Below, piece after piece: positions 12,844 through 36,424 of a stretch of 64,000 bases of DNA. The notes below the pieces were generated by a model, which made no database searches, had not been told where the DNA came from, and saw nothing but the letters and a program-made list of their open reading frames with translations. The stretch covers positions 124,001 through 188,000 of the IMG/VR virus record IMGVR_UViG_3300049215_000529; one strand, 5' to 3'. How positions within the stretch are numbered: position 1 is the stretch's first letter; the number at the start of each line of letters is the position of its first letter. The position numbers and the translations under genes are program-made.

Positions 12844-12910
12844 ATAATCTGGTAATATTCTTGCTTAATTATTAGTATATTTCTATATATCCTAGTTCAA
12901 GGGGTTTTTA

Positions 12911-13318: not shown

Positions 13319-13477
13319 TTCTTTATATTCTTCACCACATCTCTTCTCGTGAGTTTCATAATTCACGACATCAATATTTGTGTGACAAGTAGGGCACTCA
13401 TAGCAGCAAGGCATGATGTGAGCAACATCAAAGTCGCCGTCATGACAATGACAATCACATTCTTCACCGAATAACAT
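13289..13477 (-). CDS. Small Cys/His-rich hypothetical protein
   Basis: CDCHCH and CCYECPTCH; abuts the upstream HNH stop. Confidence 0.5.
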   Translation of the reverse strand: MLFGEECDCHCHDGDFDVAHIMPCCYECPTCHTNIDVVNYETHEKRCGEEYKELLSSVLGKK

Positions 13478-13967: not shown

Positions 13968-13975
13968 TTAGAATC

Positions 13976-14061
13976 TGGTACTACTGGAGGGACTTGAACC
14001 CCCATGCCCTTACGAGCGCAACGTTCTTAGCGTTGTGTGTCTGCCGTTCCACCACAGTAGC
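13976..14061 (-). tRNA. tRNA-Leu(AAG)
   Basis: CAACG-CT AAG AA-CGTTG arm, long variable arm, CCA. Confidence 0.88.
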
Positions 14062-14066
14062 ATAAG

Positions 14067-14152
14067 TGGTGCTATCAGAGGGACTTGAACCCCCACGGGA
14101 TTACTCCCAACAGGTTCTAAGCCTGCCGCGTCTGCCGTTCCGCCATGATAGC
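14067..14152 (-). tRNA. tRNA-Leu(TAG)
   Basis: GCAGG-CT TAG AA-CCTGT arm, long variable arm, CCA. Confidence 0.92.
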
Positions 14153-14156
14153 ATTT

Positions 14157-14233
14157 TGGTGCTCAAGATGGGAGTCGAACCCATAAAACCTACTTTCTGA
14201 GAGTAGTACGTATGCCAATTCCGTCACCTGAGC
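14157..14233 (-). tRNA. tRNA-Leu(CAG) with short variable loop
   Basis: CTACT-CT CAG AA-AGTAG arm, 5-nt variable region, CCA. Confidence 0.82.
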
Positions 14234-14288
14234 GTGATGCCTTTATATATCGTCTTATTCCCAGATTTCTCGGAGAATGTCACCCACT

Positions 14289-14317
14289 AAGATAAGTCGG
14301 CAGCACATGATTGTCAA
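14289..14317 (-). promoter_or_regulatory. sigma70-like promoter TTGACA-N17-TATCTT before tRNA-Leu genes
   Basis: Motif in intergenic DNA. Confidence 0.5.
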
Positions 14318-14338
14318 GACTGACAATTTTAAAATTAA

Positions 14339-14425
14339 TGGTGGTCATGGTGGGAATCGAACCCACACGGGATTGCTCCCAACAGTTTTTGAGACTGCCG
14401 CGTCTGCCTATTCCGCCACACGACC
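14339..14425 (-). tRNA. tRNA-Leu(CAA)
   Basis: GCAGT-CT CAA AA-ACTGT arm, long variable arm, CCA. Confidence 0.92.
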
Positions 14426-14481: not shown

Positions 14482-16053
14482 TTATTTTAAGAAATGGTAA
14501 GCTGCCGTTGTTAAAAATTCTTCGAATCGTTCAGCTGTAGATAATGAAACAAACAGATCACGCGCTTTATATCCATTATCAAAATCCTTAGTTTCTTTTT
14601 GAAGAGTTATCATTTCCTCATCAACCATTTCTAGAAACCAATCTTTAGTTAGTGTTTGTTTATCTTCATCGGCAGTTACTATTGCCACCTTATGTCGCAA
14701 CCACTGCCAAACCTGGGAGCGGGATATTTCTGCCGTTGCAGCGTCCTCCATTAAGTTATAAATTGGGACACAGCCTTGTCCGGACAACCATGCTGCCAAA
14801 TAACGGATGCCGACGCGAATGTTATAACGTAAACCAGCTTCAGTACAAGTCCCTTCTGGTACAGCCAGTAAATCTTGTTCAGTCACTGTTGAATAGTGAA
14901 TGTTGCCAATTTGATTAGAGTGAGGCATGTATTCGTCAAAAATTTGACGAGCTACTGGAACCAATCCAGGATGGGCTACCCACGTTCCATCATGACCAGC
15001 TTTGACCTCGCGTAGCTTGTCAGCCTTTACTTTAGCCATAGCAGCTTCATTGGCTTTTGGATCGTCCTTAATTGGAATCTGTGCAGCCATACCGCCCATA
15101 GCATGGACATTTCTCTTATGGCAAGTCTGAATTAGGAGCTGGACATACGCATTAAGAAATCCTTTGTCCATTGTCAATTGAGCGCGATCGGGTAGAATAA
15201 ATTCCGGTTTATTCGCAAACTTTTTAATAAAGCTGAAAAGATAATCCCAACGCCCGCAATTCAAGCCAGCTGAATGATCTTTTAATTCCCATAGAAATTC
15301 ATTCATTTCAAATGCGGCATAGATGTTTTCAATTAAACAAGTTGCTTTAATTGTGCCTTTTGGAATTTTGAATTTCTTTTGAGAATAAACAAAAATATCA
15401 TTCCATAGACGAGCTTCCAAATAACTTTCCATTTTAGGAAGGTAAAAATAAGGAGCAGTTCCTCTTTCCATCAATTCTTTAACATTGTGGAAAAAGTATA
15501 AACCAAAATCCAATAGAGCTGCTGGAATGGGCATATTGTCTAACATAAAGTTCTTTTCGACTAAATGCCAACCACGCGGTCTGACCATCAAGACAGCAGT
15601 TTTTTCATTGAGTTTGTAGTCTTTACCTGCGTCTGATGTGAAGGTTATGGTGCGACGGACGGCATCCATCAAGTTAACCTGACCTTGCATCATGTTTTCC
15701 CATGTAGGAGAGTTAGAGTCTTCTAGGTCAGCCATGAACACATTAGCGCCCGAATTAAGGGCATTGATGATCATTTTGCGTTCGGTTGGTCCCGTAATCT
15801 CTACTCGCCTATCTAATAAGTCAGCAGGCAATGAAGCTACAGTCCAATCCGAACCACGGATGTGTGCGGTATTTGGTAAGAAGTATGGGAGCAAATCATG
15901 TCTATCCAACAGGGCTTGTCTTGCCTGGCGAGAAAATAATATCTCATTGACTCTTGGCGCAAACCTATTTACCAAATCAACCACAAAAAAGATTGCTTCA
16001 TCTGTTAATATGGTGTCTTTATATTTATCTAAATTAACTATCTCTATTCTCAT
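14482..16053 (-). CDS. aceB: Malate synthase A
   Basis: DRRVEITGP, MADLEDS, VRPRGWH, GLNCGRWDY, GCVPIYNLMEDAATAEISR. Confidence 0.97.
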   Translation of the reverse strand: MRIEIVNLDKYKDTILTDEAIFFVVDLVNRFAPRVNEILFSRQARQALLDRHDLLPYFLPNTAHIRGSDWTVASLPADLLDRRVEITGPTERKMIINALNSGANVFMADLEDSNSPTWENMMQGQVNLMDAVRRTITFTSDAGKDYKLNEKTAVLMVRPRGWHLVEKNFMLDNMPIPAALLDFGLYFFHNVKELMERGTAPYFYLPKMESYLEARLWNDIFVYSQKKFKIPKGTIKATCLIENIYAAFEMNEFLWELKDHSAGLNCGRWDYLFSFIKKFANKPEFILPDRAQLTMDKGFLNAYVQLLIQTCHKRNVHAMGGMAAQIPIKDDPKANEAAMAKVKADKLREVKAGHDGTWVAHPGLVPVARQIFDEYMPHSNQIGNIHYSTVTEQDLLAVPEGTCTEAGLRYNIRVGIRYLAAWLSGQGCVPIYNLMEDAATAEISRSQVWQWLRHKVAIVTADEDKQTLTKDWFLEMVDEEMITLQKETKDFDNGYKARDLFVSLSTAERFEEFLTTAAYHFLK

Positions 16054-16565: not shown

Positions 16566-17798
16566 TTAAAACTGATCTTTTTCAGTACTGTCAGGAAGTG
16601 CTAAAGTAGAAGAGCTGCCTGAAGAAATTACAGTGGAAATTTGGTCAAAATAATTTGCACCAACCTCGCGTTGGTGTTTTACTGCTGTATATCCCGCTGC
16701 GACATTTTCGAATTCAGCTTCTTGCAAAGATGAGTAGGCACTCATGCCACTTGTCTTATATGCCTGCGCTAAAGTAAACATTGAATGATTTAGAGCATGA
16801 AATCCTGCCAAAGTGACGAATTGGAATTTATATCCTAATGCTCCTAGTTCATCTTGGAAAGAAGCAATTTGAGATTCTGATAAATTCTTTTTCCAATTGA
16901 AAGAAGGAGAGCAATTATAAGCCAAGGGCATGTTTGGGAAATTTTTATGAATTTCATCTGCAAACTCTTTAGCTTGACCAATATCGGGCGTAGAAGTTTC
17001 CATCCACAACATATCCGCATAAGGCGCATAAGCCAAGCCTCGGGCAATACAATACTCTACACCATTCTTAATTTTGAAAAAACCTTCGTCGGTACGCTCA
17101 GAAGATACAATGAAGGGACGATCTCTTTCGTCAGCATCTGTAGTAATTAATTTGGCTGAATCGGCATCTGTACGGGCAATGATAATAGTTCTGGTACCGC
17201 AGATATCGGCAGCTAGGCGAGCAGCGACTAATGATTTTATAAATTGATTCATGGGGACTAATACCTTGCCGCCCATATGACCGCACTTCTTTTCAGAAGA
17301 TAATTGATCCTCGAAATGTACGCCAGCAGCTCCCGCCTCAATCATACCCTTCATTAATTCAAAAGAATTAAGAGGTCCACCAAAGCCTGCCTCGGCATCA
17401 GCTACGATAGGAGCAAGCCAATATCTTTGAGGACATCCCTCCGCGCTCTCTATCTGATCAGCCCTAAGAAGTGCTGAGTTAATCTTTTTGACAACACTTG
17501 GAACGCTATTAGCAGGATACAAAGATTGGTCAGGATACATTTGACCAGCTAGATTAGCATCTGCCGCTACTTGCCAGCCCGAAAGATAAATCGCATGGAG
17601 CCCAGCTTTTACTTGTTGAACTGCCTGGTTACCAGTTAAAGCTCCCAAAGCTTTTACATATGGATCTACATTAAACAGAGTCCACAATCTTTCACAACCT
17701 AATTTTGCTATTGTATACTCGATTTGAAAGGAACCCCTTAATTTATCCACATCTTGCTTAGAGTAAACACGGAATTCATTAGGCTTATAGACACTCAT
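16566..17798 (-). CDS. aceA: Isocitrate lyase
   Basis: [15 protein letters not shown], catalytic [27 protein letters not shown]. Confidence 0.97.
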
Positions 17799-18269
17799 TT
17801 ATTCTCCATTAGGGTCGATAAAGATGATTTGCTTACCAATAGATTTCGCATAATTGATACAATTAGCAGTACCACCTGCTGTTCCGTCCCAAATTGCGAT
17901 TAAGATATCGCAATGGTCCACCATCCATTGATTGCGAATCTGCATTTTTGCCGCAGAATATCCGCCAGGAGAAACAACAACTTTTTCAATTGCGAATCTC
18001 AATAACATTCTGTAAATGTATTGTGAATGAAATGGCCAAGCATTATCTTGGTTTTCAAAAGGCACGGCTGCGGTAAAGGGAATATTTAATTTAATAGCAA
18101 TGAAAGCTGCCCATTGATCTATACCTAAAGCCATTCCAGAGATGACTCTATCAGGTTTTAGTTCACGGAGCTTGGCATCAATTTTCTTACAAACACGAAT
18201 ATAAGTTGGATTGGGAATCTTATATCCGCCGAGTTTGTCAGGTCGATGTCCAGTAAATGCTATTATCAT
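17799..18269 (-). CDS. SLOG-superfamily protein (YspA/DUF1273-like)
   Basis: FTGHRP, SGMALGIDQ, RNQWMVD, GGTANC. Confidence 0.8.
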   Translation of the reverse strand: MIIAFTGHRPDKLGGYKIPNPTYIRVCKKIDAKLRELKPDRVISGMALGIDQWAAFIAIKLNIPFTAAVPFENQDNAWPFHSQYIYRMLLRFAIEKVVVSPGGYSAAKMQIRNQWMVDHCDILIAIWDGTAGGTANCINYAKSIGKQIIFIDPNGE

Positions 18270-18643
18270 TTAGGAGTTCGTTTTCTTGGTGAATAATCTT
18301 TGTATATGTATCGTTTGCAGTAAGACTTATATGATTGGTATGTGCCACCAATTGCCACAACAACTTCTCTCCATTTTTTACCATGATATGGAATATTATT
18401 AGAAGTACAGCTAATAATATGTGCAACCTCATGTAGCAGTGTAAATTTTTCTCTTAATTGCGTTTTACGGCGCAAACATATCCAACCAGGATAATCATTA
18501 TGATTGCAATGTGCATGTGCCGCATGATGCTTATTAATTTCACATTTTTCTACACATTCACCAATACAAATTCCCCTAACTTCTTTGAAGTGTCGAATAC
18601 ATTTAGGAAATTGTGAGCGTCTTCTAATTTTCACTCCAATCAT
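18266..18643 (-). CDS. SprT-like metalloprotease-domain protein
   Basis: HEVAH and HGKKW. Confidence 0.55.
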   Translation of the reverse strand: MIGVKIRRRSQFPKCIRHFKEVRGICIGECVEKCEINKHHAAHAHCNHNDYPGWICLRRKTQLREKFTLLHEVAHIISCTSNNIPYHGKKWREVVVAIGGTYQSYKSYCKRYIYKDYSPRKRTPK

Positions 18644-21550: not shown

Positions 21551-21781
21551 TTACTCTTCGCCTTCAAAAGATTCAGCAAAAGTAACTTCTATTTTGATTT
21601 TCGAACCCATCCTAACGCCTTGAGCAGCCAATTTTTTGACTGTAAGGGTTCCCTCAATTGCAGCTGATTTAGCTGCAATGTTTTTGGTTTCTACGCTGCC
21701 ATCATTGGTTTTGAATTCAATAGTAACGTCGCCACCATTAACTTTAAAGGAGTCAATCTCTCCTTTGAATGTGGCTCTCAT
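21551..21781 (-). CDS. Hypothetical protein
   Basis: ATGA overlap with upstream ORF. Confidence 0.55.
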   Translation of the reverse strand: MRATFKGEIDSFKVNGGDVTIEFKTNDGSVETKNIAAKSAAIEGTLTVKKLAAQGVRMGSKIKIEVTFAESFEGEE

Positions 21782-22254
21782 TTTCGTGGAAAGAGAGACG
21801 GTTGAGAGTTAAACATTTGATCCCAAAGGTCCTTAGCTGGCATAACAGCCGGTGGAGTAACCGTTGGAGCAGTCATGCTAACTGGAGGGTTAACACTTAC
21901 AGTTCCATCAGAAGCAACACTTGCAGGAACTGGAACTGTAATTCTAGCCGAAACTTGAGTTCGTTTTTGGTCATCATATGCCGTATCCAAATCCCAAGAG
22001 GCAGACAATGGATGATACAATAACGCTTCAACCTGCGAACCATCAGCCAAGGTCACAGTAATGGGACTTCGCGCCCAACCATGTGGCTCAATGTGGCTAG
22101 TAAATTTGGAACGAACCATGTCTCTAACTTCACGGTGACGCGCATTTGGCATCGCCAGTTTCACTTTATTGCTGACATCCAGCGCAGTGAACAAAACCTC
22201 ATCCTGTACCAAACCTTCGAGCACATCATCAACAATATCTTCCAACGTTTGCAT
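21778..22254 (-). CDS. Hypothetical protein
   Basis: 158 aa, preceded by promoter and GGAG. Confidence 0.65.
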   Translation of the reverse strand: MQTLEDIVDDVLEGLVQDEVLFTALDVSNKVKLAMPNARHREVRDMVRSKFTSHIEPHGWARSPITVTLADGSQVEALLYHPLSASWDLDTAYDDQKRTQVSARITVPVPASVASDGTVSVNPPVSMTAPTVTPPAVMPAKDLWDQMFNSQPSLFPRK

Positions 22255-22327: not shown

Positions 22328-22504
22328 TCACAAGTGTTTATTTAGCCAATCAACTGAGAATCCGATTATGGCTATAACCGCAAATATTGGCCAAATTATG
22401 GCTGCCCAAAACATAAACCAAAAATCGTAATAGACACGCAAGAATTTTGTTAAAGCATGTCCCACAAATAATCCAATCAAAAGGTAAAGCAAGAAATAAA
22501 TCAT
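22328..22504 (-). CDS. Small membrane protein (58 aa, not in ORF track)
   Basis: Own translation MIYFLLYLLIGLFVGH...WAAIIWPIFAVIAIIG...; start overlaps NADAR stop. Confidence 0.55.
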   Translation of the reverse strand: MIYFLLYLLIGLFVGHALTKFLRVYYDFWFMFWAAIIWPIFAVIAIIGFSVDWLNKHL

Positions 22505-22947
22505 TACTCTCCCTGTAATTCTTTACGGACCCTCATCAAAGTCTTGCCAAGCATATTTTTGCCTGTACCATCTTTGCCACATCCCCAGTACCAGTCCACG
22601 GGCGAATCTTCAATAAGCTCTTCATTGCCAGTAGCCATTAGTTCGGCGCGCAAGTCTGCATGTTGTAGAAATTTAGCTAGAACACACTGATACATAACAT
22701 CATCTTTGACATGGTTCCAATCACCACGAAGTTTTATTTTCTGTCCAAGATCACGAGCTTCGCGAGGAGTCTTAGCTGCCCAAATCATTTCTTCGTCTTC
22801 TAGGATAACAGTTTTGGCAGCTTGATAAGCCGTTTCAACATTGTCACACCAGCGCCCGCCACCCGGACCAACTATAAACATTCTGGCTTTCTTGAAGTTA
22901 TTCAGAAATCCATATGGTTCATTGGTCTTATAAAATTTAATAGCCAT
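22504..22947 (-). CDS. NADAR-family hydrolase (YbiA-like)
   Basis: ETAYQAAK, KFLQH, LxEDSP.DxYWG, GKNMLGKTLMRVR. Confidence 0.92.
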   Translation of the reverse strand: MAIKFYKTNEPYGFLNNFKKARMFIVGPGGGRWCDNVETAYQAAKTVILEDEEMIWAAKTPREARDLGQKIKLRGDWNHVKDDVMYQCVLAKFLQHADLRAELMATGNEELIEDSPVDWYWGCGKDGTGKNMLGKTLMRVRKELQGE

Positions 22948-23296
22948 CGTATTCCCTGTTAATCAGTTTTGTAAAAGCTTCGTTTTCTTCAAACCCGCGT
23001 GCCAACATATCCTGCCTAATTTCTTCGACAGATCTATCGCCATCATTGTCCCAAACACTTTCCATACACTCAGAAAGATCGTTAGACTGATCCCACATAT
23101 TATTTTCTTTGTGAAAATACAATTTTGGTGTTATGAAAACCATAACAAAATTTTCCGGAGTATCACCTGGAGATTCAACAAACGAACTCTCGCCTTTAAC
23201 TAAGAAATAAAAATCTGATGGAGTTGATGTTTCGCATAATTTTTGATATGCGTCTCTGTCGCCATATGGAGGATCTTCCCAAGATACATTACTCAT
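22937..23296 (-). CDS. Hypothetical protein
   Basis: Overlapped ORF between macro and NADAR genes. Confidence 0.6.
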   Translation of the reverse strand: MSNVSWEDPPYGDRDAYQKLCETSTPSDFYFLVKGESSFVESPGDTPENFVMVFITPKLYFHKENNMWDQSNDLSECMESVWDNDGDRSVEEIRQDMLARGFEENEAFTKLINREYDGY

Positions 23297-23787
23297 TCAT
23301 CACCTTCTCTGCGATAAATTACAACACGAACATTCTTATCTTCAAGATAATTTGCGAAGTTAGTTAGCGTGCCTAAATAGTGTTCCCAAATACCACCACC
23401 AAGATTGCATCCAATTTTCCATGGGAATGCGATGCTTTCCAAATCAGGAATCTCTGCAATTCGCAACAAACACCTATGGAAACATTTGTCTCGAACTAAT
23501 ATGCCATCCAAAGTCGATTTGGGATACTTGGGCTTGCCAGGATAGTATTGAGCAAACATGTTGATGACATATCGCTGCTCTTGACCATCACCCAATATTT
23601 TTATTGTTCCAAGAGCATCTGGTTCAGTCCTTGCGACATAAGTGTTAGCATGAGGAAACTTATCAAAAATAGCTTTGGCTGTTCCAGCAGAATTCTGTGT
23701 CAAACAATTGCATTGATGTGCAATATATTTTTCTTTAGAATTTAGCAAGTCACCTGTAACAATTTCAATCATGTGTCTATCTGTCAT
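23293..23787 (-). CDS. Macrodomain ADP-ribosyl hydrolase (TARG1/DarG-like)
   Basis: GDLL, IAHQCNC, GTAKAI, PWKIGCNLGGG. Confidence 0.88.
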   Translation of the reverse strand: MTDRHMIEIVTGDLLNSKEKYIAHQCNCLTQNSAGTAKAIFDKFPHANTYVARTEPDALGTIKILGDGQEQRYVINMFAQYYPGKPKYPKSTLDGILVRDKCFHRCLLRIAEIPDLESIAFPWKIGCNLGGGIWEHYLGTLTNFANYLEDKNVRVVIYRREGDE

Positions 23788-24722
23788 TTAGGAGTATGTA
23801 TAACTGGTAATCCTCGACCTATTGAGGGTCTTGCAAACTGAGGATTATCTCTCATCCAAGATTGAGTCATCCATAATTGTCCGCACCCACTCCCGACATC
23901 ATCTTGTCCAGCAGGATCAAACATGCGCGTAGAGAAACCACGTTCCAATAATAGACTCTGGAAATTAGCAGCTAATTCACGTTGACGTGCATTTGCAGCA
24001 GCAACCGTTTCCTCTCGTTCGCAGATAACTGAAATGGTAGCTTGCCAAATGCTTGGATCAAAAAGTTTCATGAGTCTATCAGCATCTTCAGCCGAAGAGT
24101 TTTTCTCATGAGCGCAGTAGTTGAAGAAGGGTTGGCGACCAACTTCCATTGCCCACAGAGTTCCTTGGCGAGCAATCTCTCCCAAAGTTAATTTCTTTTG
24201 GAACGGAATGAGTTGATTGCGAGCTTCATCCGTGCTTTCATGAACGGAAAACTGCAAACCAACCTTATCCACTTCCTTGGAAATGTCAATGACTGGTTGG
24301 TAATCGACACGCGGAGCTGAAGTTGAAATCAGCAGTGCGGCTTGTGGATACAATGAATGCAGCTTGCGAATTGCCGGATTCAGCTCCTTAAGATTGAGCA
24401 TGGGCTCGCCCATGCTCATGAACATGATTTGCATACGCTGGACCTTGGTAGGGTCAATGCCTTTATCGGCAAACAGGTGTTCCGTTTGCGAAACAATCTC
24501 ATCCGCTGTTAAAGAGCGGACGAAACTGTCACCAGCACCACAGAATCGGCATCCAATTGGACAACCGCTTTGAGTGGAACAGCAAACCACTGTTCTGGCT
24601 TCAAAAGTTGGATATTTGTAGAGGACAGATTCCGCCACAGCATTATCCTTTTCGAAGACATATTTGAAAACATTTTCATCTATGCTAGGAATACACCTGG
24701 TTTTATTCCATAATTGTTGCAT
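23784..24722 (-). CDS. Radical-SAM RNA methyltransferase, RlmN/Cfr-like
   Basis: CCSTQSGCPIGCRFC, MSMGEP, GSGCGQL. Confidence 0.8.
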   Translation of the reverse strand: MQQLWNKTRCIPSIDENVFKYVFEKDNAVAESVLYKYPTFEARTVVCCSTQSGCPIGCRFCGAGDSFVRSLTADEIVSQTEHLFADKGIDPTKVQRMQIMFMSMGEPMLNLKELNPAIRKLHSLYPQAALLISTSAPRVDYQPVIDISKEVDKVGLQFSVHESTDEARNQLIPFQKKLTLGEIARQGTLWAMEVGRQPFFNYCAHEKNSSAEDADRLMKLFDPSIWQATISVICEREETVAAANARQRELAANFQSLLLERGFSTRMFDPAGQDDVGSGCGQLWMTQSWMRDNPQFARPSIGRGLPVIHTPK

Positions 24723-24870
24723 TTATTTCATCTCAATGATTGAAACGGTTTTATTTCTTTGTTGGGCTGCCCATAATCGGGTTGTTCTAAAAAATACACA
24801 AACTCTTGATTGTTAAACATATTTCCTCAAAATCTACTAATTTGGTGATATAGATATACCATCACCATAC

Positions 24871-25752
24871 ATGATCACGGAGCATTATATGTCGCGACCA
24901 AAACGAATTATCACCGAGCAAGAAAAACAAAAAATTGTGGCAGACTACAAAGCTGGCGTATCACTCAAAAAATTGCAAAAAGAAACGAAGTTGCAGCAGA
25001 AGCAACTGAAATTCATTCTTGACCAATTTGATGTTCCAATTCTAACAGCATATGAAACGCAGAGACGAAAAGCGATGTTAGAAGAACGAAACTATTTTGA
25101 CGAGTTAGACGCGCTTCAATGCTATGTGTTAGGGTTGATATTCGGTGATGGATGCGTTCATTACAATCCTAAAAGATACAAATATGCTACAACGATTGTT
25201 AGCAATGATATGGATATCTTAGAAAGTGCCAGACATTTATTAGGGACCAACTTTCCTATTACTAAGAGAAAGAAAGCCAAAGCTTATAACCTTGTCATCA
25301 ACTCCAAACATTTATGCCAAGAACTAATCAATAAGTTTCATCTACAAAGTCCCAAGAGTAGTAAATTGATTTTTCCTAACTTACCACAAGATATGTATCA
25401 GTTCTTCGTTTCGGGACTGTTGAGCACCGATGGGTGTGTCAGAATTGACGACCGCAGAAAAAATCAATCATGTGGTATCGAGTTTTCCTATTCTTCTAAT
25501 TGTTTAGATTTCGTTCAAAAATTGCGTCATTATCTATCTAATACGCTTGATATCGCCGAAGATGGACATATCAAAACGATAAAGCGAAGTAAGAAACGAA
25601 AGAACCCCAACTACTCCTTGCGATACTCGGGAACCAATGCAACTAAGATATTAACTTGGATTTACGAAAATACCTCACCAATAACAAGATGTCAAAGAAA
25701 ATACGATATCTACCGTAATCATTTGGCTTGCGTTTCAAATTCTATAATATAG
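24871..25752 (+). CDS. LAGLIDADG homing endonuclease (two motifs)
   Basis: YVLGLIFGDG and FVSGLLSTDG; convergent overlap with PARP 3' end. Confidence 0.85.
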   Translation: MITEHYMSRPKRIITEQEKQKIVADYKAGVSLKKLQKETKLQQKQLKFILDQFDVPILTAYETQRRKAMLEERNYFDELDALQCYVLGLIFGDGCVHYNPKRYKYATTIVSNDMDILESARHLLGTNFPITKRKKAKAYNLVINSKHLCQELINKFHLQSPKSSKLIFPNLPQDMYQFFVSGLLSTDGCVRIDDRRKNQSCGIEFSYSSNCLDFVQKLRHYLSNTLDIAEDGHIKTIKRSKKRKNPNYSLRYSGTNATKILTWIYENTSPITRCQRKYDIYRNHLACVSNSII

Positions 25753-27203
25753 CGGATACAATGTTGTTGTTCTGGTCCACTTGGCGTATATGTAATCAAT
25801 TCTTCATTATATAGTGACCCGCCTGTTTTAGCCCAAACACTATGTGCTGGGTTAATATTCTTCTTGGTATAGAAGTGAGACTGTTGCGTGATCTTTTGAT
25901 TTCCAAAAGCCACATCTGCTAAAAAGAGATATGCTGTTTTATTTGTTCCTTGAGCCCAGTAGCTACCTCTAACATCACAATAATTCATACTCTTGGTAGA
26001 ATTGGTTGCCCAGTAGATTCCATCCCCAAATGCAGACCCAGCATGGATAACGCCAGAAGGACGAATCAAAAGACCTTTGGTTGTGATACCAATCATGTTT
26101 GCACGACGAGTACCGTGCCATGCAGGAAGAACGTTTGCCTTCTTATAAAGGGCATCCATTTCTTTGGTAATGTCAATACGTTCTTTTACCCACTTAGCAT
26201 ATACTTCAGAAGGAGTGTATTTGCCACATTCCTTAGCAATCTTCTCGGAAGCTTCCATCCAATGCTTGTCTTCATCGTGACGAGCAACACGGAAAACTTT
26301 ATGAGTCTTTAGTTTGCCCAAGCCACCATGATTGCTTGCACGGGTACCATGTAGCATGTTATCAATCCACTTGAACACCGGATCGGAAGGATCAACGTAC
26401 TCCAAATCAGCTTTCAAAGTCGCATACTGCGAATCTACTGCGCTCTTCTTGGAGATAACTGCTTGAACGTTCTTTGCGTCAGCAAAGACGTCGAGAATGT
26501 CGAAAGCTTTATTGAGCTTATCGTCGTCGTCCAAACGTAATACGTCAGCATCAATCTTACGAGGGAGGACGTGAGGAATGTTAGAGTAGTATTGGCTGGT
26601 AAGCTTATTCAACTCCTTGACGTCAGGCTTCTTGACGTGGATTTGCTTACGAGCTTCATCCAGAATTTGTTTGGCGAAATCAATTTGGGTTAACGACAAT
26701 TGACCCAATGGACACTTGTTGGTATCAAGGTTCAATTCAACGAACTCTTGTGTAACGCCGAACCAAGTACGAACTAAGTCCTGCACTTGCGCATGAAGTT
26801 TACTAGCCGATTCGTCTTTCTCAGTGACAGTTGCGCCCAATCGTTTGAGAGCTTCCACAGAAACGGTAGAGTCTACTTTAGATTTACCCATATCAGAGCC
26901 AACGTCAGCCTTAACCAACTTGACTTCAACATAGCCCTTTTTGGTTTTGGACTTGATAATCTTCTCGGCTTCTTTTTCGGCATCAGCCTTATCTTCGCAG
27001 ACACGATACTCTTTGGCGCCAGAAACACCAACACGCCCATACTGCGTATAGATATAGTACTTACCATCATTGGATTCAATCAACTCCAAGTTGTAATACT
27101 TGTTATTGTTATTGATGATGTCAGTAAAATTTAGAGTATAACGCTTAAAAACGTCTTTGATGGAAACTTGAAGTTCATCTTCTCTGATAACAGGCTTAGC
27201 CAT
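25719..27203 (-). CDS. PARP with WGR, regulatory and catalytic domains (start MAKPV)
   Basis: YYNLELI...QYGRVG (WGR-type); CPLGQLS...TSQYYSNIPH (regulatory); WHGTR, FGDGIYWA, YNEELITY (H-Y-E triad). Confidence 0.9.
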   Translation of the reverse strand: MAKPVIREDELQVSIKDVFKRYTLNFTDIINNNNKYYNLELIESNDGKYYIYTQYGRVGVSGAKEYRVCEDKADAEKEAEKIIKSKTKKGYVEVKLVKADVGSDMGKSKVDSTVSVEALKRLGATVTEKDESASKLHAQVQDLVRTWFGVTQEFVELNLDTNKCPLGQLSLTQIDFAKQILDEARKQIHVKKPDVKELNKLTSQYYSNIPHVLPRKIDADVLRLDDDDKLNKAFDILDVFADAKNVQAVISKKSAVDSQYATLKADLEYVDPSDPVFKWIDNMLHGTRASNHGGLGKLKTHKVFRVARHDEDKHWMEASEKIAKECGKYTPSEVYAKWVKERIDITKEMDALYKKANVLPAWHGTRRANMIGITTKGLLIRPSGVIHAGSAFGDGIYWATNSTKSMNYCDVRGSYWAQGTNKTAYLFLADVAFGNQKITQQSHFYTKKNINPAHSVWAKTGGSLYNEELITYTPSGPEQQHCIRYIIEFETQAK

Positions 27204-27567
27204 TTTTAACCTTGGTTCGTTTACGTGGTTGAGGTGCCTCAAGTGGAGGCTCGGGCTCTGACGCCAGTGGCGCCGTGAGCCTCGTCAAAATCAAGTCCAT
27301 TATAAGGCTGATCATGCCGCCAGCAAGACCCCAGCAAATTAATAAATTGAGGCTCCATATTTTTTCGTGCAATAAATAGACGAACCAACCACAATGGAAA
27401 CCAAGGCAGAAATAACAATCCAGTAATTTATAAAAGAATGTACCCACATGAGGGTTTTTAAAGAGTTCATTACGGGCTCTTGCCATCAAACCCCAGGGAC
27501 CGTCTGATTCTTTAATAAAGAAAGCTAGACCAAAAATGGCACCAACAACAATTATGAAATCCAACAT
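27196..27567 (-). CDS. DUF1360-like membrane protein
   Basis: LLDCYFCLGFH flanked by TM segments. Confidence 0.55.
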   Translation of the reverse strand: MLDFIIVVGAIFGLAFFIKESDGPWGLMARARNELFKNPHVGTFFYKLLDCYFCLGFHCGWFVYLLHEKIWSLNLLICWGLAGGMISLIMDLILTRLTAPLASEPEPPLEAPQPRKRTKVKNG

Positions 27568-27570: not shown

Positions 27571-28224
27571 TTACACTCGATTCATGCAGTCAGTATAATC
27601 CAATACAGTGTCACCATATTGAACCTTTTGATACACATTAAAAGACTTCGCCGTGTATCCTCTGCCCTCTTGATCGCGAATAAAACTCCTCAATCGTGGA
27701 GAGGCTTTCATATCATACTTCTTCAATGCAACCAAAGATTTAGAAACACAAAGATACGGGTATGGATTGGGCTCGTAAACAATATCAAGAACCCTTGATT
27801 CCATTGCTTTAGTAAAGCCTTTGTCCAAAATTGCTTTATCATCTAGGCAATAAGCAACAGCATCTACATTCAAGAAGACTGTCTGTGGAATGGTCTCTAA
27901 TTTTTTAGAGAATTTGGGATCATTTCCAAATGCCCAAGTAGAATCCAGATTCCAAATATCAAATTCAACCTTGTCAAGAGTTAACTTGTAGCCGCCAAAA
28001 CGATTCTTTTTGGCTTTGTATTTAATCAAAGCATCTAAAGCCTGAGATGGACAGTCAACTACTACATCAATGTCACGAGGTTGATTACCAAAAGACCAAT
28101 CTCTAACCGCACCACCGAAGACTGCTGCCTTCCCCCAACTCTTAACCTCTTCTAACAGCTGAGAAATTTTAGGATTCTCACAAAGCTTTACCAAATTTGA
28201 CTGAGTTGATTCTGCTAAATTCAT
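27571..28224 (-). CDS. Minimal CCA/poly(A)-polymerase-like nucleotidyltransferase
   Basis: FGGAVRD...PRDIDVVV, NRFGGYK. Confidence 0.7.
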   Translation of the reverse strand: MNLAESTQSNLVKLCENPKISQLLEEVKSWGKAAVFGGAVRDWSFGNQPRDIDVVVDCPSQALDALIKYKAKKNRFGGYKLTLDKVEFDIWNLDSTWAFGNDPKFSKKLETIPQTVFLNVDAVAYCLDDKAILDKGFTKAMESRVLDIVYEPNPYPYLCVSKSLVALKKYDMKASPRLRSFIRDQEGRGYTAKSFNVYQKVQYGDTVLDYTDCMNRV

Positions 28225-31165: not shown

Positions 31166-33040
31166 TTACTTGACCAAATCCAAAAACTCTTCTTCCGAAA
31201 TCAAGTTAGTGCCCAGCTTACGTGCAGCTTGCGCCTTTGAACTTGTGCTGCTAGGGTCAGCAATTACCAAGTAGGTAAGTCCTTTGCCCACAGAACTCTT
31301 AACATCAGCACCAGCCTCAGCCGCCATCTTCTCCAAGAGTGGGCGCTTGTTCTTCATAGCGCCAGTGAAACAGACTGACTTGCCAGTCATATTACCAATT
31401 ATTTTGGCTTTGACCTCTACTCCATTGTTAAGTAAGTCCAAAATCAATTTCTGATTGTGTCGCAAACCATCTGCCAAGAACTTTGCCTTGGTCGGACCAA
31501 CACCCGGCACTTGTTCAAAGGCTTCGGCATTGAGTTGCCCAAACTTCTCTAGTGTATCACAGCCCGCGTTCATGATTGCCTTGATTGTGCTTTGACCAAT
31601 CATCGGAATACTAAGGGCTCCAAGCAAAACTTCCAGACCAATCTCTTTGTTAGCCCATAGAATGTCCAAACACTTCTGCGCGGTCTTGTCCCCCAAGCGA
31701 TCTAGCTCAGAGATATCTGTTAGCTTCAAGGTGTATAGGTCAGCAACTGTAGTAACCTTCTTGGCATCCACTAGTTTCTCAACCAAAGAATCGCCCCACT
31801 CAAGTAGATTAAGCTCTTTGACCCAGTTCTTGATACGACCAATGACCTGTGCACGGCAACGTTTAGTGTTGCCACACATCAAATTCTCACCATCCATCTT
31901 GGTCAGACCGCCACATTCAGGGCAGAAGTGAGGCGCCTTGGCAACTTTGCCAGTACCCTTGACCAACTCTTCAATGCGAGGGATAACATCATTGGCTCGG
32001 GCAACCAAAACAGTTGCGCCGATATCCAACTTCAACTCTTCAATGTATGACATATTGTAGATGCTAGCTCGGGTGACTGTCGCGCCCACTAGTTGCACAG
32101 GATCAACCACAGCAACCGGAGTAATACGTCCGCTGTTACCTACTTGCCAAATGATATCACGAATGACTGACTCGCGAGCTTCGTTATCAAACTTGAAAGC
32201 AATAGCTCCCTTGGGTCGCATATCCTTGTCACCAAGTGCAAGTTGCTTCTCCATGTTGTCAACACGAATTACCAAGCCGTCGATATCGTAATCCAACTTG
32301 TCACGCTTGTCATCTTGATACTCTCGCCAATGCTTATTGACCATATCAGCATTCTTCATTACCCACCAGTTGGGGGTATCGAGGTCTTGATTGACGAGCC
32401 ATACGAATTGCAACTGCTCATTACCAAAGTCTACATCGCCTAGCACCTGATAGAACATGATGTTGAGCTTATCAACACCTACGCCATCCAAGCGCTTGCT
32501 GGTACCAGAGGCTGCATTACGAGGATTAGCCTTGTCAGCAAAGTATTGCTTGTGGTTGCTCCTGGTCATGATAATTTCGCCACGCAAGGAACCAGTAAAC
32601 TTGTCTTTCAGATGAGACCGAACACCACCCATCTTAACAACGTTGACTGTAATGTCTTCACCAGTCTCGCCATCACCACGAGTAATGGCTTGTACGAGGC
32701 TACCCTTTTCGTAAATCAGCTCGATGGATAGACCGTCAAGCTTCTCAGTAACGAAAAGTTTGCCATCAGGGTAAGTATCTTCAACCCATTTGGACAGCTC
32801 GGCAGGTGTATTGACTTTATCCAATGAGCCCATGGGGATTTGATGCTTGGCTTTCTTCCATTCAGAAGGGACGATAGGAGCACCAATTGCAGTGACAGCC
32901 TTGCTGGTAGGGTCTAAAGTTCGCAATTCATCTACCCAGGCATCGTATACCTTATCCGAAACAGAGGGTTGATGGTTGTAATAATCAGTGCGGGCTTGGA
33001 AAATCTTGTTTTCTAGCTCTTTGATACGATCCTTCGTCAT
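31166..33040 (-). CDS. ligA: NAD-dependent DNA ligase
   Basis: EKLDG, TRGDG, NPRNAASG, DGLVI, AFKF, Zn finger, HhH, BRCT. Confidence 0.97.
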   Translation of the reverse strand: MTKDRIKELENKIFQARTDYYNHQPSVSDKVYDAWVDELRTLDPTSKAVTAIGAPIVPSEWKKAKHQIPMGSLDKVNTPAELSKWVEDTYPDGKLFVTEKLDGLSIELIYEKGSLVQAITRGDGETGEDITVNVVKMGGVRSHLKDKFTGSLRGEIIMTRSNHKQYFADKANPRNAASGTSKRLDGVGVDKLNIMFYQVLGDVDFGNEQLQFVWLVNQDLDTPNWWVMKNADMVNKHWREYQDDKRDKLDYDIDGLVIRVDNMEKQLALGDKDMRPKGAIAFKFDNEARESVIRDIIWQVGNSGRITPVAVVDPVQLVGATVTRASIYNMSYIEELKLDIGATVLVARANDVIPRIEELVKGTGKVAKAPHFCPECGGLTKMDGENLMCGNTKRCRAQVIGRIKNWVKELNLLEWGDSLVEKLVDAKKVTTVADLYTLKLTDISELDRLGDKTAQKCLDILWANKEIGLEVLLGALSIPMIGQSTIKAIMNAGCDTLEKFGQLNAEAFEQVPGVGPTKAKFLADGLRHNQKLILDLLNNGVEVKAKIIGNMTGKSVCFTGAMKNKRPLLEKMAAEAGADVKSSVGKGLTYLVIADPSSTSSKAQAARKLGTNLISEEEFLDLVK

Positions 33041-34985: not shown

Positions 34986-35321
34986 TTAATCAAGCTCGGT
35001 GGAGGCATCGCAATCTTTTTCGTCCTGCCATATTTTTAAAGCATCAGCACGTGATATCTTAAAGTGTCTAAGAAGAGCCTCTAATAAAATATAGTCATTT
35101 GCCTCTTCTTTACGACAAATACAACAGCTATATCTTGTGTTATCGTAATCATCATCGTTCTCATCATTATTTTCGTCCTCACCCTCTTCTTCGTCTAAGG
35201 GTTGTGGGTCAGCACATTTGTTTGAACAAAATTGATTGGAACATTCTTCGCAGAAATAGTAGTTTCCACAATCAGGAAAGTTACGACTACAATTTGCACA
35301 TGTATAAAAATCAACACCCAT
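34986..35321 (-). CDS. Cys-rich hypothetical protein
   Basis: CANC, CEEC, CCIC. Confidence 0.6.
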   Translation of the reverse strand: MGVDFYTCANCSRNFPDCGNYYFCEECSNQFCSNKCADPQPLDEEEGEDENNDENDDDYDNTRYSCCICRKEEANDYILLEALLRHFKISRADALKIWQDEKDCDASTELD

Positions 35322-36424
35322 TATCTCATCTCCACTTCTAGTTCTGAAACGAGCCTTTTTCTAATGGCTCTTTGTATTTTTTCTACTTCTGAGTTTTTTA
35401 GAGTTGTATCAATAGAACGATAAGTCACTCTGTAGCAATGCGAGGTTTTATCCTTCTTTTTAAACTGATCGATTAGTTCAATGGACTCAATGTAGTTGAG
35501 CTTATCTTCTTCACGGGCAATGCTACAGAAGTCATTGTATGTGAATTTAGGGCTAAGATAGAATGACACATCCTTATAGCACATCTCATACTTAGAATAG
35601 GGCTTGAATTTGGTAATCTTGCCAGCCTTGAATTGATCTAAGAAACGCGGGTCAGTGCTCCAGAATAGTCGAATATCAGGGATATCGAACATAACCATTG
35701 CCAATCGCTCTAACCCAAGACCAAATGCCCAGGCTTGAGTACCTGGTAAACCAAGGTCTTTCATGATATCGGGGTGAACGGTACCCGCGCCAAGGATTTC
35801 TAGGTCTTTAGTTGACCCATCTTCCATCTTGAACTTGACCTCTACTTCCAAAGAATCAACTGTAAAAGGGAAGTAGATGTTTTTGTGCTCTGAATCCTCT
35901 AAAAATCGGAAGACACACTTATCACCGAATAGGTGTTTTACCAGTCCTGTTAATCTTTTACGCAAATCCTTCTTAACATCAGTGCCAGGATCTACGATGT
36001 AGAAGGCATCCATCTGATGGAAAGCTGGATAATGGGTCGCATCAATGGCGTCTTTTCGATATACATCACCACAGGTAATATATCGAAGTCTACTTTGACC
36101 ACTGTTAGTATGACCAAGTGGATACAAATAGCAAGTCATGTGTGTTCTTAATACAGTCTTTTCATCTAAATAGAATGTATCAGATGGGCTTCTAGATGGG
36201 TGATCTTCGGGAACACGTAATCTATCGAAATTATATTCGATAGGTACATATGGATTGTCAATATCGATTTTGGCTAAATCCGAAAAGTACTCAAATACCT
36301 TCTCTTTAACAATGGCAATCGGATGATTTGGCTCATTGTACAGATTCTTACCAATTTTTTCGATAATACTGCTAGGGATGTTATTCATAACGTACTTTTG
36401 ACTTTCCAGATTTCCTTTAGCCAT
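35321..36424 (-). CDS. pheS: Monomeric organellar-type phenylalanyl-tRNA synthetase (catalytic plus FDX anticodon-binding domain)
   Basis: NHPI, HPSR..DT.Y, LRTHMT, YRKDAIDATHYPAFHQ, AFGLGLERLAM, DIRLFWS; C-terminal SHCYRVTYRS. Confidence 0.93.
   Translation of the reverse strand: MAKGNLESQKYVMNNIPSSIIEKIGKNLYNEPNHPIAIVKEKVFEYFSDLAKIDIDNPYVPIEYNFDRLRVPEDHPSRSPSDTFYLDEKTVLRTHMTCYLYPLGHTNSGQSRLRYITCGDVYRKDAIDATHYPAFHQMDAFYIVDPGTDVKKDLRKRLTGLVKHLFGDKCVFRFLEDSEHKNIYFPFTVDSLEVEVKFKMEDGSTKDLEILGAGTVHPDIMKDLGLPGTQAWAFGLGLERLAMVMFDIPDIRLFWSTDPRFLDQFKAGKITKFKPYSKYEMCYKDVSFYLSPKFTYNDFCSIAREEDKLNYIESIELIDQFKKKDKTSHCYRVTYRSIDTTLKNSEVEKIQRAIRKRLVSELEVEMR

Follow-up and report, generated by a model that had tools for sequence, protein, structure and literature searches.

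A PARP1/2/3-like ADP-ribosyltransferase and its candidate erasers in an uncultured megaphage from moss

Judged from its sequence, the gene at 25719-27203 (minus strand) of the 64,000-nucleotide stretch analysed here (the window) encodes a genuine ADP-ribosyltransferase of the PARP1/2/3 clade. On balance we favour the view that it is part of an ADP-ribosylation cycle of the PARP/PARG type which the phage encodes and which breaks in DNA probably trigger, and that this cycle sits in the accessory arm of the genome beside independent NAD+/ADP-ribose counter-defence genes. As the PARP is accompanied by a macrodomain, an ADP-ribosylglycohydrolase (ARH) and a PARG in relatives, the role of phage PARPs becomes directly testable.

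The source is an uncultured giant tailed bacteriophage from a moss metagenome, identified by its portal, TerL and prohead protease, all of which were found. The record is 204 kb long and is a 47%-complete megaphage fragment according to CheckV. Its tailed megaphage relatives measure 360-480 kb, and CheckV completeness and these relatives together give an estimate of more than 400 kb for the full genome. TerL is only ~25% identical to that of any cultured phage, and by sequence the PARP clade is a separate, purely metagenomic megaphage lineage. The PARP is an accessory gene of this uncultured clade of 360-480 kb phages.

The PARP and macrodomain proteins

An earlier note, made from the letters of the window, had described a PARP with WGR, helical and catalytic domains and an H-Y-E triad. 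Pfam and an alignment with PARP1 bear this out for a protein of 494 aa plus stop, read from an ATG start. The WGR domain covers aa 22-94 (26922-27140; PF05406, E = 2.7e-19), the helical regulatory domain (HD, PARP_reg) aa 134-258 (26430-26804; PF02877, E = 1.8e-17) and the ART catalytic domain aa 277-494 (25722-26375; PF00644 matching aa 277-459, E = 4e-19), all on the minus strand. Residues H363, Y397 and E468 align with H862, Y896 and E988 of PARP1, and vary little or not at all among 25 phage sequences. The WGR signature reads Y55-G56-R57, not W-G-R, and these three residues are invariant in the same sequences. The ART also carries a clade-specific helical insert of ~35 aa (aa ~325-358) ahead of its WHGTR motif, which the alignment did not find in the PARPs of 05F01, XacN1 and phi4:1.

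The closest solved structures are human PARP1 WGR-HD-CAT chains (E = 4e-31). Structure prediction, which the note had proposed as a check, agrees. The AF2 model (pLDDT 74, with the helices of the helical domain at aa 138-262) is matched by Foldseek to PARP1 on a DNA break (E = 3.5e-24, TM 0.63-0.67), although the D-loop and acceptor-loop regions are of low confidence. More than 450 homologues with 69-90% identity were found in metagenomes, which points to strong purifying selection along the whole protein.

Compared with human PARP2, PARP3 and the PARP1 core (clade 1), the domain order, triad and overall fold are alike, and zinc fingers and BRCT are both lacking, as in PARP2/3. The phage protein differs in its low identity (~22%), its short N-terminus (21 aa), its Y-G-R signature, the insert before the catalytic His, and N466 where PARP1 has Y986. 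The PARPs of Aeromonas phage Aeh1, Cellulophaga phi4:1, Xanthomonas XacN1 and Klebsiella 05F01/FBKp34 belong to the same family: they are 27-30% identical, keep H-Y-E without exception and have both the WGR and the regulatory domain. PARPs in GenBank phages are annotated with all three domains. Phage PARPs have already been catalogued in silico (PMC4245714, PMC7824862, PMC9503650). The phages named above have no PARG and no ARH, whereas the megaphage clade has both as well as the insert in the ART.

The macrodomain gene (23293-23787, minus strand, 164 aa) is recognized weakly by Pfam alone (E = 0.006). By Foldseek, its AF2 model (pLDDT 91) folds as a macrodomain (1e-8; DarG TM 0.78), phrog_335 matches at E = 1e-22, and the family profile matches Bt_1257 (2e-5) and Mtb DarG (0.02) in the PDB. 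The TARG1/DarG-class assignment of the earlier note can thus be narrowed to the SCO6735/Bt_1257 subclass of the ALC1-like class. The fold is common to SCO6735, Bt_1257, DarG and TARG1, the nearest in sequence being Bt_1257, DarG and SCO6735, and the H-x-C-N and (R/K)-I-G-C-x-(L/A/I)-G-G-x-W motifs of ALC1-like macrodomains are present. Lys84/Asp125 of TARG1 and Lys80 of DarG are missing, and, unlike DarG, the protein has no adjoining DarT. Q80, invariant among 19 aligned orthologues, sits at the position of the essential Gln85 of SCO6735, a Gln in place of the catalytic Lys of TARG1/DarG. SCO6735 strips Glu/Asp-linked and thymidine-linked ADP-ribose (PMC9411070).

Co-occurrence of the PARP with erasers

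A macrodomain of this family lies 1.5-4.5 kb downstream of the PARP in 24 of 24 PARP-carrying contigs, while the genes between them vary (DenV-like glycosylase, B12 radical-SAM, RlmN-like radical-SAM, homing endonuclease). In Klebsiella phages 05F01 and FBKp34, which are not related to the megaphages, it lies 2.5-5 kb from the PARP. An ARH was present in all six PARP-carrying genomes tested, with one to three ARH genes in the PARP megaphage clade. The ARH of the window (45055-45969, minus strand) is a member of the ARH/DraG/ARH3 superfamily (Pfam 2e-72; PDB MJ1187 2e-26, ARH3/DraG ~1e-16 to 1e-19). A bacterial-type PARG lies 46-76 kb upstream of the PARP in 6/6 PARP-carrying relatives that reach far enough (E 1e-45 to 1e-49; T. 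curvata PARG 1e-57; GGG-X7-QEE signature). It was found in none of five PARP-less relatives checked, which include G014 (100% complete) and G017 (81%). The contigs of this phage and its twin end 54 and 69 kb from the PARP, and a PARG would lie past the contig end.

The same kind of pairing is seen in Herpetosiphon aurantiacus and Clostridioides difficile CD160, where a WGR(+HD)+ART PARP is combined with a bacterial-type PARG. Both bacterial PARPs are active in vitro and are reversed by their own PARGs, and activation of HaPARP requires DNA (PMC8120803, PMC4245714). In contrast to the bacterial pairs, the phage PARP and PARG are too far apart for an operon, and the phages add the SCO6735-class macrodomain beside the PARP and the ARH genes.

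By analogy with PARP1-3 and the Herpetosiphon PARP, the WGR domain would bind a break in phage or host DNA and so free the autoinhibitory helical domain, and the ART, with NAD+ as donor, would then modify itself, other proteins or the ends of DNA with ADP-ribose, probably building chains. Co-occurrence suggests that removal may fall to the phage's own enzymes: the bacterial-type PARG (if this phage has one), ARH and the SCO6735/TARG1-class macrodomain. The last, encoded ~2 kb downstream, might take the final ADP-ribose off Glu/Asp or DNA.

The distribution is not strictly reciprocal. Macrodomain, ARH, NADAR and PARG have each been seen without a PARP, and erasers occur in PARP-less G001, G002, G014 and G023. 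Among the points against the preferred view are these PARP-less erasers, the Trp-to-Tyr change in the WGR signature and the poorly modelled D-loop and acceptor loop. In favour of the PARP-macrodomain link, the tree of LigA sequences places PARP-less lineages at no fewer than two to three positions; one of them, L138, is nested with good support among PARP carriers and has lost the entire block. G014 has neither PARP nor macrodomain but does have NADAR. In six cultured PARP phages neither PARG nor ARH was found, so a PARP can exist with the macrodomain as its only detectable eraser. The counts are small and the genomes related. Since most of the PARP carriers stem from one radiation, common ancestry accounts for some of the pattern.

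It is possible, if less probable than a cycle, that writer and erasers have no link. The PARP would then serve host takeover or act in a toxin-like way, transferring ADP-ribose to host proteins as Alt, ModA and ModB of T4 do. Macrodomain, ARH, PARG and NADAR would do no more than strip host-made ADP-ribosylation (DarT1/DarT2-type) or degrade ADP-ribose-derived immune signals, and adjacency would reflect gene order inherited within an accessory arm. Besides the PARP-less erasers, it is in keeping with this that SCO6735-type macrodomains neutralise DarT2 (PMC9411070), that PARP and macrodomain are ~200 kb apart in XacN1-like phages, and that Iyer et al. consider phage Macro and NADAR proteins to target mostly host-made ADP-ribose derivatives, and suggest that phage PARPs may act like the T4 ARTs (PMC9503650, PMC7824862). 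Being contiguous with the PARP, the macrodomain, NADAR and a conserved 158-aa gene can be removed by a single deletion, which implies nothing about function. However, the pattern is nested, as among the megaphages the PARP was never seen without macrodomain (24/24), ARH (6/6) or PARG (6/6) where this could be checked, and the distance to PARG means that one deletion cannot explain the joint absence in G014 and G017. PARG is specific for the ribose-ribose bonds of poly(ADP-ribose), which to our knowledge is made by no bacterial defence. The WGR+HD architecture also suggests DNA-dependent regulation and not a constitutive effector.

Repair genes, NADAR and NAD+ synthesis

A narrower role in DNA repair is rather unlikely. 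Here the PARP would mark nicks that arise in the repair of UV or other damage, e.g. those cut by a DenV-like glycosylase/lyase. It would recruit or time an NAD+-dependent ligase with a BRCT domain, in the way that PARP1 acts on XRCC1-Lig3. Such a ligase, LigA with a C-terminal BRCT, is encoded at 31166-33040 (minus strand; Pfam; TIGR00575 454 bits, above cut-off) near the PARP, together with a metallophosphatase and Dam, and a SprT-like protein and a UvrD-like helicase lie in the same arm. A DenV-like glycosylase (Pyr_excise, T4 endonuclease V-type) immediately follows the PARP in ~11 lineages, the phi4:1 PARP is flanked by a nucleotidyltransferase, an ATP-dependent DNA ligase and a DNA methylase, and moss is a light-exposed habitat. 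LigA, the metallophosphatase, Dam and the DenV-like gene next to the PARP also count in favour of the break-activated cycle preferred here. Yet DenV was not found in the 204 kb of this phage nor in about half of the PARP-carrying lineages, and it is also present in PARP-less L064. LigA is retained by all PARP-less relatives, and a bacterial-type BRCT is not known to bind poly(ADP-ribose).

The earlier note went further and placed PARP, macrodomain, NADAR, ARH and NadV/NatV (with LigA) in one integrated, interdependent and self-sufficient system. We consider this improbable, even though ~32 kb hold all these genes, in a genome whose estimated size exceeds 400 kb, and G006 and G007 show the same clustering in this region. 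The genes themselves stand. NADAR (22504-22947, minus strand, 147 aa) belongs to the YbiA family (Pfam 2e-35; E. coli YbiA 2b3w 5e-21; TIGR02464 111 bits, cut-off 73.7). NadV, a nicotinamide phosphoribosyltransferase (46699-48099, minus strand; Pfam NAPRTase and NAMPT_N; NF006629 640 bits), and NatV, a bifunctional NMN adenylyltransferase/Nudix protein (48147-49223, minus strand; Pfam CTP_transf_like and NUDIX; NF003791 411 bits), both score above cut-off. A second NADAR-like gene, claimed at 45-49 kb, does not exist: six-frame Pfam and clade-specific HMM searches of the whole 204-kb record each found one NADAR, and ORFs 44217-45053 and 49216-49980 gave no NADAR signal.

NADARs hydrolyse guanine N-glycosidic ADP-ribose (PMC11125620), a linkage that is not a known PARP product, which argues against the one-system reading. 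NADAR is missing from PARP-carrying G009, a complete genome, and from G010; NadV was not found in the PARP carriers G008 and G010, but PARP-less G001 and G014 have it. Since they are distributed independently of the PARP, NADAR and NadV/NatV are not obligate parts of its system. The self-contained cycle is thus only partly supported: the writer-eraser association speaks for it, the distribution of NADAR and NadV does not. NadV and NatV form NARP2, a stand-alone counter-defence pathway (bioRxiv 10.1101/2024.02.11.579819). The adjacent genes are like those of Vibrio phage KVP40 and others, with no difference seen, and the phage pair appears to be an ordinary NARP2 member. It is probably better read as counter-defence against NAD+ depletion that may incidentally supply the PARP and LigA with NAD+, and NADAR as counter-defence against guanine-ADP-ribosylating toxins. 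To speak of an undescribed system was too strong, given the catalogued phage PARPs and the described NARP2 pathway.

That the PARP is catalytically dead, or a mere DNA- or NAD-binding module, is very hard to credit despite the low-confidence loops, the unusual insert and the altered WGR signature, as H, Y and E are invariant, the many homologues are under strong purifying selection, and PARG co-occurs with it.

Genes around the PARP

Two genes left out of the earlier note separate the PARP from the macrodomain. A LAGLIDADG homing endonuclease (24871-25752, plus strand; Pfam LAGLIDADG_3/_1) is convergent with the PARP and overlaps its last 34 nt. Not all relatives have it at this site (L015, L016 and L032 do, L001 does not), and in a relative from run X5 it is 95-99% identical while the flanks have diverged; it is a mobile insertion. 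The RlmN/Cfr-like radical-SAM protein (23784-24722, minus strand, 312 aa; PDB RlmN 6e-21; TIGR00048 8e-30, below cut-off) is variable-slot cargo, found at the PARP-macrodomain position in the window lineage and L001 only. In metatranscriptome contigs these radical-SAM and homing endonuclease genes alone are covered; the PARP and erasers have no coverage, a further point against the proposed cycle.

A lineage-specific 119-aa ORF (22937-23296, minus strand) has start/stop overlaps with the macrodomain and NADAR genes; no Pfam or PHROG match and no orthologue in relatives was found. The 158-aa gene (21778-22254, minus strand), to which family searches including PHROG gave no match, has an orthologue 3' of NADAR/macrodomain in ~21 loci and closes the PARP-macrodomain-NADAR block in relatives.

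Upstream, a small membrane protein (27196-27567, minus strand) has three predicted hydrophobic, transmembrane-like segments and a CxxC in an alignment of 23 orthologues. Its gene is always directly upstream of the PARP and is retained in PARP-less L138, L139, L143, L126 and L133, so it marks the flank of the locus rather than being a partner of the PARP. Next comes a 217-aa nucleotidyltransferase with a PolyA_pol/CCA-type head domain (27571-28224, minus strand; PF01743 6e-5; phrog_1614 2e-9); the nucleotidyltransferase directly upstream of the phi4:1 PARP is similarly annotated. Finally, the same arm encodes a YpsA-type SLOG domain protein (17799-18269, minus strand; PF06908 4e-14), a member of another NAD/ADP-ribose-linked family.

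The PARP and its domains

The PARP gene lies at 25719-27203 on the minus strand of the window and encodes 494 residues, starting from an ATG with AAGG ahead of it. Pfam places three domains over their cut-offs: WGR at residues 22-94 (PF05406, E 2.7e-19, 69.5 bits against a cut-off of 22), PARP_reg or HD at residues 134-258 (PF02877, E 1.8e-17, 64 bits against 26.8) and the catalytic or ART domain at residues 277-459 (PF00644, E 4e-19, far over its cut-off). Human PARP1 supplies the closest solved structures, its WGR-HD-CAT chains (E 4e-31); PARP2 and PARP3 come next.

We aligned 25 sequences, 22 from the clade and one each from Klebsiella phage 05F01, Xanthomonas phage XacN1 and Cellulophaga phage phi4:1. 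H363 and E468 do not vary among them, and Y397 is conserved in at least 90%. By alignment, H363 and Y397 correspond to H862 and Y896 of PARP1; E468 was placed at E988 via an N-x-E-[LIMY]-I-[VT]-Y motif that the protein has in common with phi4:1 and PARP1. The three domains and the aligned triad bear out the PARP1/2/3-like layout with H-Y-E that had been claimed for this protein. The WGR signature in the clade reads Y-G-R, not W-G-R, the position of PARP1 Tyr986 holds Asn, and ahead of the WHGTR motif the clade has a helical insert of its own, about 35 residues long.

Structure prediction had been proposed as a check, and its outcome agrees. An AlphaFold2 model built from 22 orthologues averages a pLDDT of 74 and is weak in the D-loop and acceptor-loop regions. 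It contains the helical bundle of the HD, and Foldseek fits it onto PARP1 on a DNA double-strand break (E 3.5e-24, TM 0.63-0.67).

More than 450 metagenomic homologues were found at 69-90% identity, many of them on contigs of 440-496 kb. Purifying selection on the full-length PARP is strong, and the megaphage clade that has it is widespread. At one relative's locus (L035) the gene is cut down to a 170-aa WGR-only ORF (10001-10513), with a 146-aa PARP-like fragment 8 kb off (17944-18384); these pieces may be a decayed or rearranged copy.

Genes around the PARP

Gene order was compared over sixty-odd loci anchored on PARP, on the neighbouring macrodomain gene or on the small ORF u123. The conserved order is LigA, a metallophosphatase, (Dam), u123, PARP, a variable slot, the macrodomain gene, zero to two genes, NADAR and the small ORF u158. 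The cargo of the slot depends on the lineage, e.g. Pyr_excise in about 11, a B12-type radical-SAM gene in 5, an RlmN-like radical-SAM gene in the window's lineage, and a homing endonuclease in 5 contigs including the window's own. Pyr_excise is a pyrimidine-dimer glycosylase of the T4 endonuclease V type that comes directly after PARP in those lineages, for example at 11498-11968 of locus L019 and 11549-12025 of locus L014.

In the window the slot holds two genes. A LAGLIDADG homing endonuclease (24871-25752, plus strand) overlaps the 3' end of PARP by 34 nt. In run X5 a related phage retains this gene at 95-99% identity with a diverged PARP flank, a pattern that would be expected of an actively spreading element. 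The RlmN/Cfr-like radical-SAM gene (23784-24722, minus strand), which is without the N-terminal domain, lies between PARP and the macrodomain gene. In Klebsiella phage 05F01, which is unrelated, a homologue (25% identity, E 4e-12; L038:7268-8197) comes directly after PARP. In other relatives it is the B12-type radical-SAM gene, a different one, that comes after PARP, and the adjacency of PARP and radical-SAM genes recurs. The radical-SAM, macrodomain, u119 and NADAR genes overlap start-to-stop and are therefore probably co-translated. A scan for promoters and terminators gave counts near those of shuffled controls. Metatranscriptomes yielded three short contigs, all on the radical-SAM and homing endonuclease genes (two runs, probably one data set filed twice).

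Neither u158 (21778-22254, minus strand) nor u119 (22937-23296, minus strand) has a family by Pfam, PHROGs or the Atlas. The ORF u123 (27196-27567, minus strand) lies directly upstream of the PARP slot in all relatives. Its product weakly matches DUF1360; G-P, R and CxxC are invariant in it, and three hydrophobic, transmembrane-like segments are predicted. The ORF was considered as a partner of PARP and set aside, since it is a small membrane protein that PARP-less relatives keep.

The macrodomain gene (23293-23787, minus strand, 164 aa) is identified by model, profile and PHROGs (phrog_335); Pfam alone is marginal (E 0.006). Its AlphaFold2 model has a pLDDT of 91 and matches macro folds at 1e-8 in Foldseek, with the highest TM for DarG (0.76-0.78) and Bt_1257 (0.75). 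A profile of 19 orthologues matches Bt_1257 at 2e-5, M. tuberculosis DarG at 0.02 and SCO6735 at 0.12. Fold and profile uphold the class in the earlier description of a TARG1/DarG-like macrodomain, but the catalytic residues of those enzymes are not there. Neither the Lys84/Asp125 dyad of TARG1 nor Lys80 of DarG is present; the aligned residue is Q80, invariant in 19 of 19 orthologues, there is no conserved Lys near it, and a G-G-G/A-G-G loop occupies the position of the TARG1 Asp. The protein therefore has no catalytic site of the TARG1 or DarG type. Instead, its 'NMFAQY' aligns to 'NMIGQH' of SCO6735, with Q80 at the position of Gln85. That residue is essential to SCO6735, which strips thymidine-linked ADP-ribose from DNA and Glu/Asp-linked ADP-ribose from proteins (PMC9411070). 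The macrodomain adjoining PARP is thus TARG1-class and of the SCO6735 type. A second, unrelated and weak macro-like ORF (Pfam E 0.003) lies outside the window, at about 110329-110514 of the whole record (G000:C1; L012:1444-1959, minus strand).

Writer and erasers across relatives

Family searches confirmed the ARH, NadV, NatV and LigA genes and the NADAR downstream of PARP. The NADAR (22504-22947, minus strand) is YbiA-type, with PF08719 at 2e-35 (122.8 bits against a cut-off of 35.1) and TIGR02464 at 111.4 bits against 73.7. It is closer to E. coli YbiA (5e-21) than to the other solved NADAR, 8bau (3e-8). A Glu aligns with YbiA in 'L-I-E-D-S' / 'L-V-E-H-T' and may be the last-strand catalytic glutamate (in place of Asp or His) of the YbiA subfamily. 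NADAR enzymes hydrolyse guanine-linked ADP-ribose (PMC11125620). The ARH gene is at 45055-45969, NadV at 46699-48099 (NF006629, 640 bits against 405) and NatV at 48147-49223 (NF003791, 411 bits against 409). NadV and NatV, 47 nt apart, form an adjacent pair of Nampt and bifunctional NMNAT/Nudix, as in the NARP2 pathway. LigA, which has a BRCT domain, is at 31166-33040.

The second NADAR-like gene reported at 45-49 kb is not present: a six-frame Pfam search and the clade HMM with filters off ruled it out, the unassigned ORFs there are silent at Pfam E<=1, and a 278-aa ORF is silent in the ESM Atlas. Pfam and PHROGs found no DarT-like gene among the neighbours, and PARP is the sole nearby ART. 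A second ARH gene does occur in the same record outside the window, at about 199.7-200.6 kb (L174:3583-4524); genes for a CYTH protein, an R2K ATP-grasp protein and a DnaJ-protein-kinase fusion also lie near the out-of-window macro-like and ARH genes.

Relatives supply a further eraser. A bacterial-type PARG (PF10021, E 1e-45 to 1e-49) is found in 6 of 6 PARP-bearing relatives whose contigs reach 46-76 kb upstream of PARP, namely the large contigs G006 (37965-38405), G007 (102118-102549), G008 (398221-398649), G009 (430590-431012), G021 and G022; among the PARG loci of these relatives are L153 and L154 (1444-2304). The relatives' PARG scores 1e-57 against that of T. curvata, and its GGG-X7-QEE is intact and fits the GGG-X6-8-QEE signature. 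The next ORF in L154, of 207 aa, has a C-terminal end that by eye resembles a GIY-YIG nuclease motif. PARG was not found in the 204-kb record, which ends 54 kb from PARP, short of the position in relatives, or in a twin 130-kb contig that runs about 16 kb past the end of the record and still stops some 69 kb from PARP. PARG cleaves chains only, and the product of PARP is therefore probably chains.

The macrodomain gene is at the locus in 24 of 24 PARP-bearing contigs that continue far enough, including L019, L027 and L030, where tblastn detected it; NADAR is there in about 20. Among large contigs, PARP, macrodomain and ARH occur together with NADAR and NadV in the window's record (G000, 47% complete) and in G006 and G007 (both 100%), without NadV in G008 (97%), without NADAR in G009 (100%) and without either in G010 (83%). 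Among the PARP-less, G001 (95%) has macrodomain and NadV and lacks ARH and NADAR, G002 (96%) has macrodomain, ARH and NADAR and lacks NadV, G014 (100%) has ARH, NADAR and NadV and lacks the macrodomain, and G013 (97%) has neither macrodomain nor ARH nor NadV. PARG was not found in the PARP-less G001, G002, G013, G014 and G017, and occurs without PARP in G023 and G024.

At the locus itself, the whole block from PARP to u158 is missing in the syntenic PARP-less loci L138, L139, L143 and L126. Other PARP-less loci keep NADAR only (L133, in G014), the macrodomain only (L071, in G001) or both (L064). The LigA tree has PARP-less lineages at two to three positions at least: L138 sits inside a well-supported PARP-bearing clade (98/95 beside L016), and G014 is sister to the PARP-bearing G008 and G009 with weak support (80/77).

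The pattern is nested. Within the clade PARP is never seen without macrodomain, ARH and, among contigs reaching far enough, PARG; each eraser also occurs alone, and NADAR and NadV vary independently of PARP. A real writer-eraser cycle would be expected to leave such nesting as its comparative signature. The analysis also tells members of the cycle apart from ordinary counter-defence neighbours. The earlier note had proposed a self-contained cycle of writer, erasers and NAD+ regeneration, and co-occurrence across jumbo phages as one check. Macrodomain, ARH and PARG do accompany PARP, although they are also found in PARP-less relatives, but NADAR and NadV do not track it; NADAR and NadV/NatV are most plausibly counter-defence genes in their own right that share the accessory arm. 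Could the erasers serve counter-defence only, with PARP an unrelated host-takeover enzyme? Their presence in PARP-less phages is consistent with this and the nesting points the other way; we consider it doubtful. The co-occurrence is suggestive and not proof, because the counts are small and the genomes related.

Cultured PARP phages extend the comparison. The clade's macrodomain family has a relative in all six (E 2e-8 to 3e-3). Its gene and PARP are 2.5-5 kb apart in FBKp34 and 05F01, both Klebsiella phages, and about 200 kb apart in the XacN1-like ones. Pfam found no macrodomain or NADAR among the hypothetical genes flanking PARP in the XacN1-like, Cellulophaga and FBKp34 phages; as the profile search showed, Pfam is too weak for this macrodomain family. 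NADAR is in five of the six, and ARH and PARG are in none. Flanking the PARP of phi4:1 are genes for a nucleotidyltransferase of the PolyA_pol type, a DNA ligase and a DNA methylase; this echoes the window's Dam, u113, NTase, u123, PARP and LigA arrangement.

Possible roles and the phage

Eukaryotic DNA-break signalling depends centrally on PARP1-3, which are also drug targets, and their relatives in prokaryotes and viruses have been catalogued over twenty years. Phage PARPs were listed from 2005-2014 (PMC1266365, PMC4245714) and have been discussed as 'PARTs' (PMC7824862, PMC9503650); the GenBank annotation of the FBKp34 PARP already names all three domains. In the literature searched on phage and bacterial PARPs we found no experiments on any phage PARP. 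The system belongs to the known PARP/PARG kind and is no new kind of system; the earlier suggestion of an undescribed system goes too far. PARP-bearing and PARG-bearing viruses are different sets in PMC4245714, and therefore a phage clade with PARP, PARG, TARG1-class macrodomain and ARH together has, as far as we have seen, not been described.

How might the parts work together? Judging from PARP1-3 and a Herpetosiphon PARP (PMC8120803), DNA breaks would activate the phage enzyme via WGR/HD, and it would then transfer ADP-ribose, probably as chains. Going by co-occurrence and family chemistry, PARG and ARH would undo the chains, and the macrodomain would take off the terminal unit on Glu/Asp or DNA ends. 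A narrower role for PARP, in repair with DenV and LigA, is unlikely in our view. LigA and, in many relatives, Pyr_excise are at the locus; Pyr_excise is absent from this phage's 204 kb and occurs in the PARP-less L064. The fullest version of the writer-eraser cycle is a eukaryote-style, break-triggered PAR signalling system of the phage's own, in which PARP, PARG, TARG1-class macrodomain and ARH would draw on its NAD+ salvage and be coupled to its BRCT ligase, which is NAD+-dependent, and in many relatives also to a DenV-type glycosylase. It might serve repair of a huge genome, or the capping and shielding of broken phage ends from host nucleases. We regard this version as quite unlikely. If it holds, bacterial viruses would for the first time have been shown to possess a complete PAR cycle, one from which the eukaryotic system may have evolved.

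Klebsiella phages 05F01 and FBKp34, with the macrodomain family within a few kb of PARP, are tractable cultured surrogates for phage PARP function. Such surrogates would allow testing of the claim that phage PARPs are precursors of eukaryotic PARPs.

The record (204,190 bp) encodes a portal, large terminase, prohead protease and Pol III-alpha-type polymerase, which rule out the giant-virus origin raised by the 440-496-kb contigs of relatives. Compared with cultured phages its terminase reaches only about 25% identity, and a nucleotide search against cultured phages gave no match. Near-complete relatives span 360-480 kb, one with terminal repeats. The source is a moss metagenome, with weaker matches from soil, groundwater and wastewater. 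A search of 185,579 species-representative genomes gave a single close PARP homologue (65% identity), on L078 (JBFWUT010000077.1), a 6.4-kb contig in a MAG of 'Candidatus Berkiella', an amoeba-associated bacterium; its placement may reflect a binning artefact or point to the host.

The window carries 19 tRNA genes in three arrays (11117-14425, 58262-58409 and 61444-61899), with duplicated Arg, Glu, His, Leu and Gly isoacceptors. Malate synthase (14482-16053, minus strand, Pfam 3e-109) lies beside isocitrate lyase (16566-17798, minus strand, 2e-102), a glyoxylate-shunt pair; both are in the relatives' loci L020/L021, and isocitrate lyase was seen in the 467-kb NCBI relative L001. At 17799-18643 (minus strand) a YpsA-type SLOG gene (4e-14), retained in PARP-bearing and PARP-less relatives alike, adjoins a weak, sub-cut-off match to a SprT-like metalloprotease (4e-5). 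A single-chain PheRS-like gene (35321-36424, minus strand) has a class II core and an FDX-ACB anticodon-binding domain in the monomeric 'mitochondrial-type' layout and is conserved in relatives, as are a Kelch-repeat beta-propeller protein and the UvrD-type helicase that it adjoins (41524-44239, minus strand).
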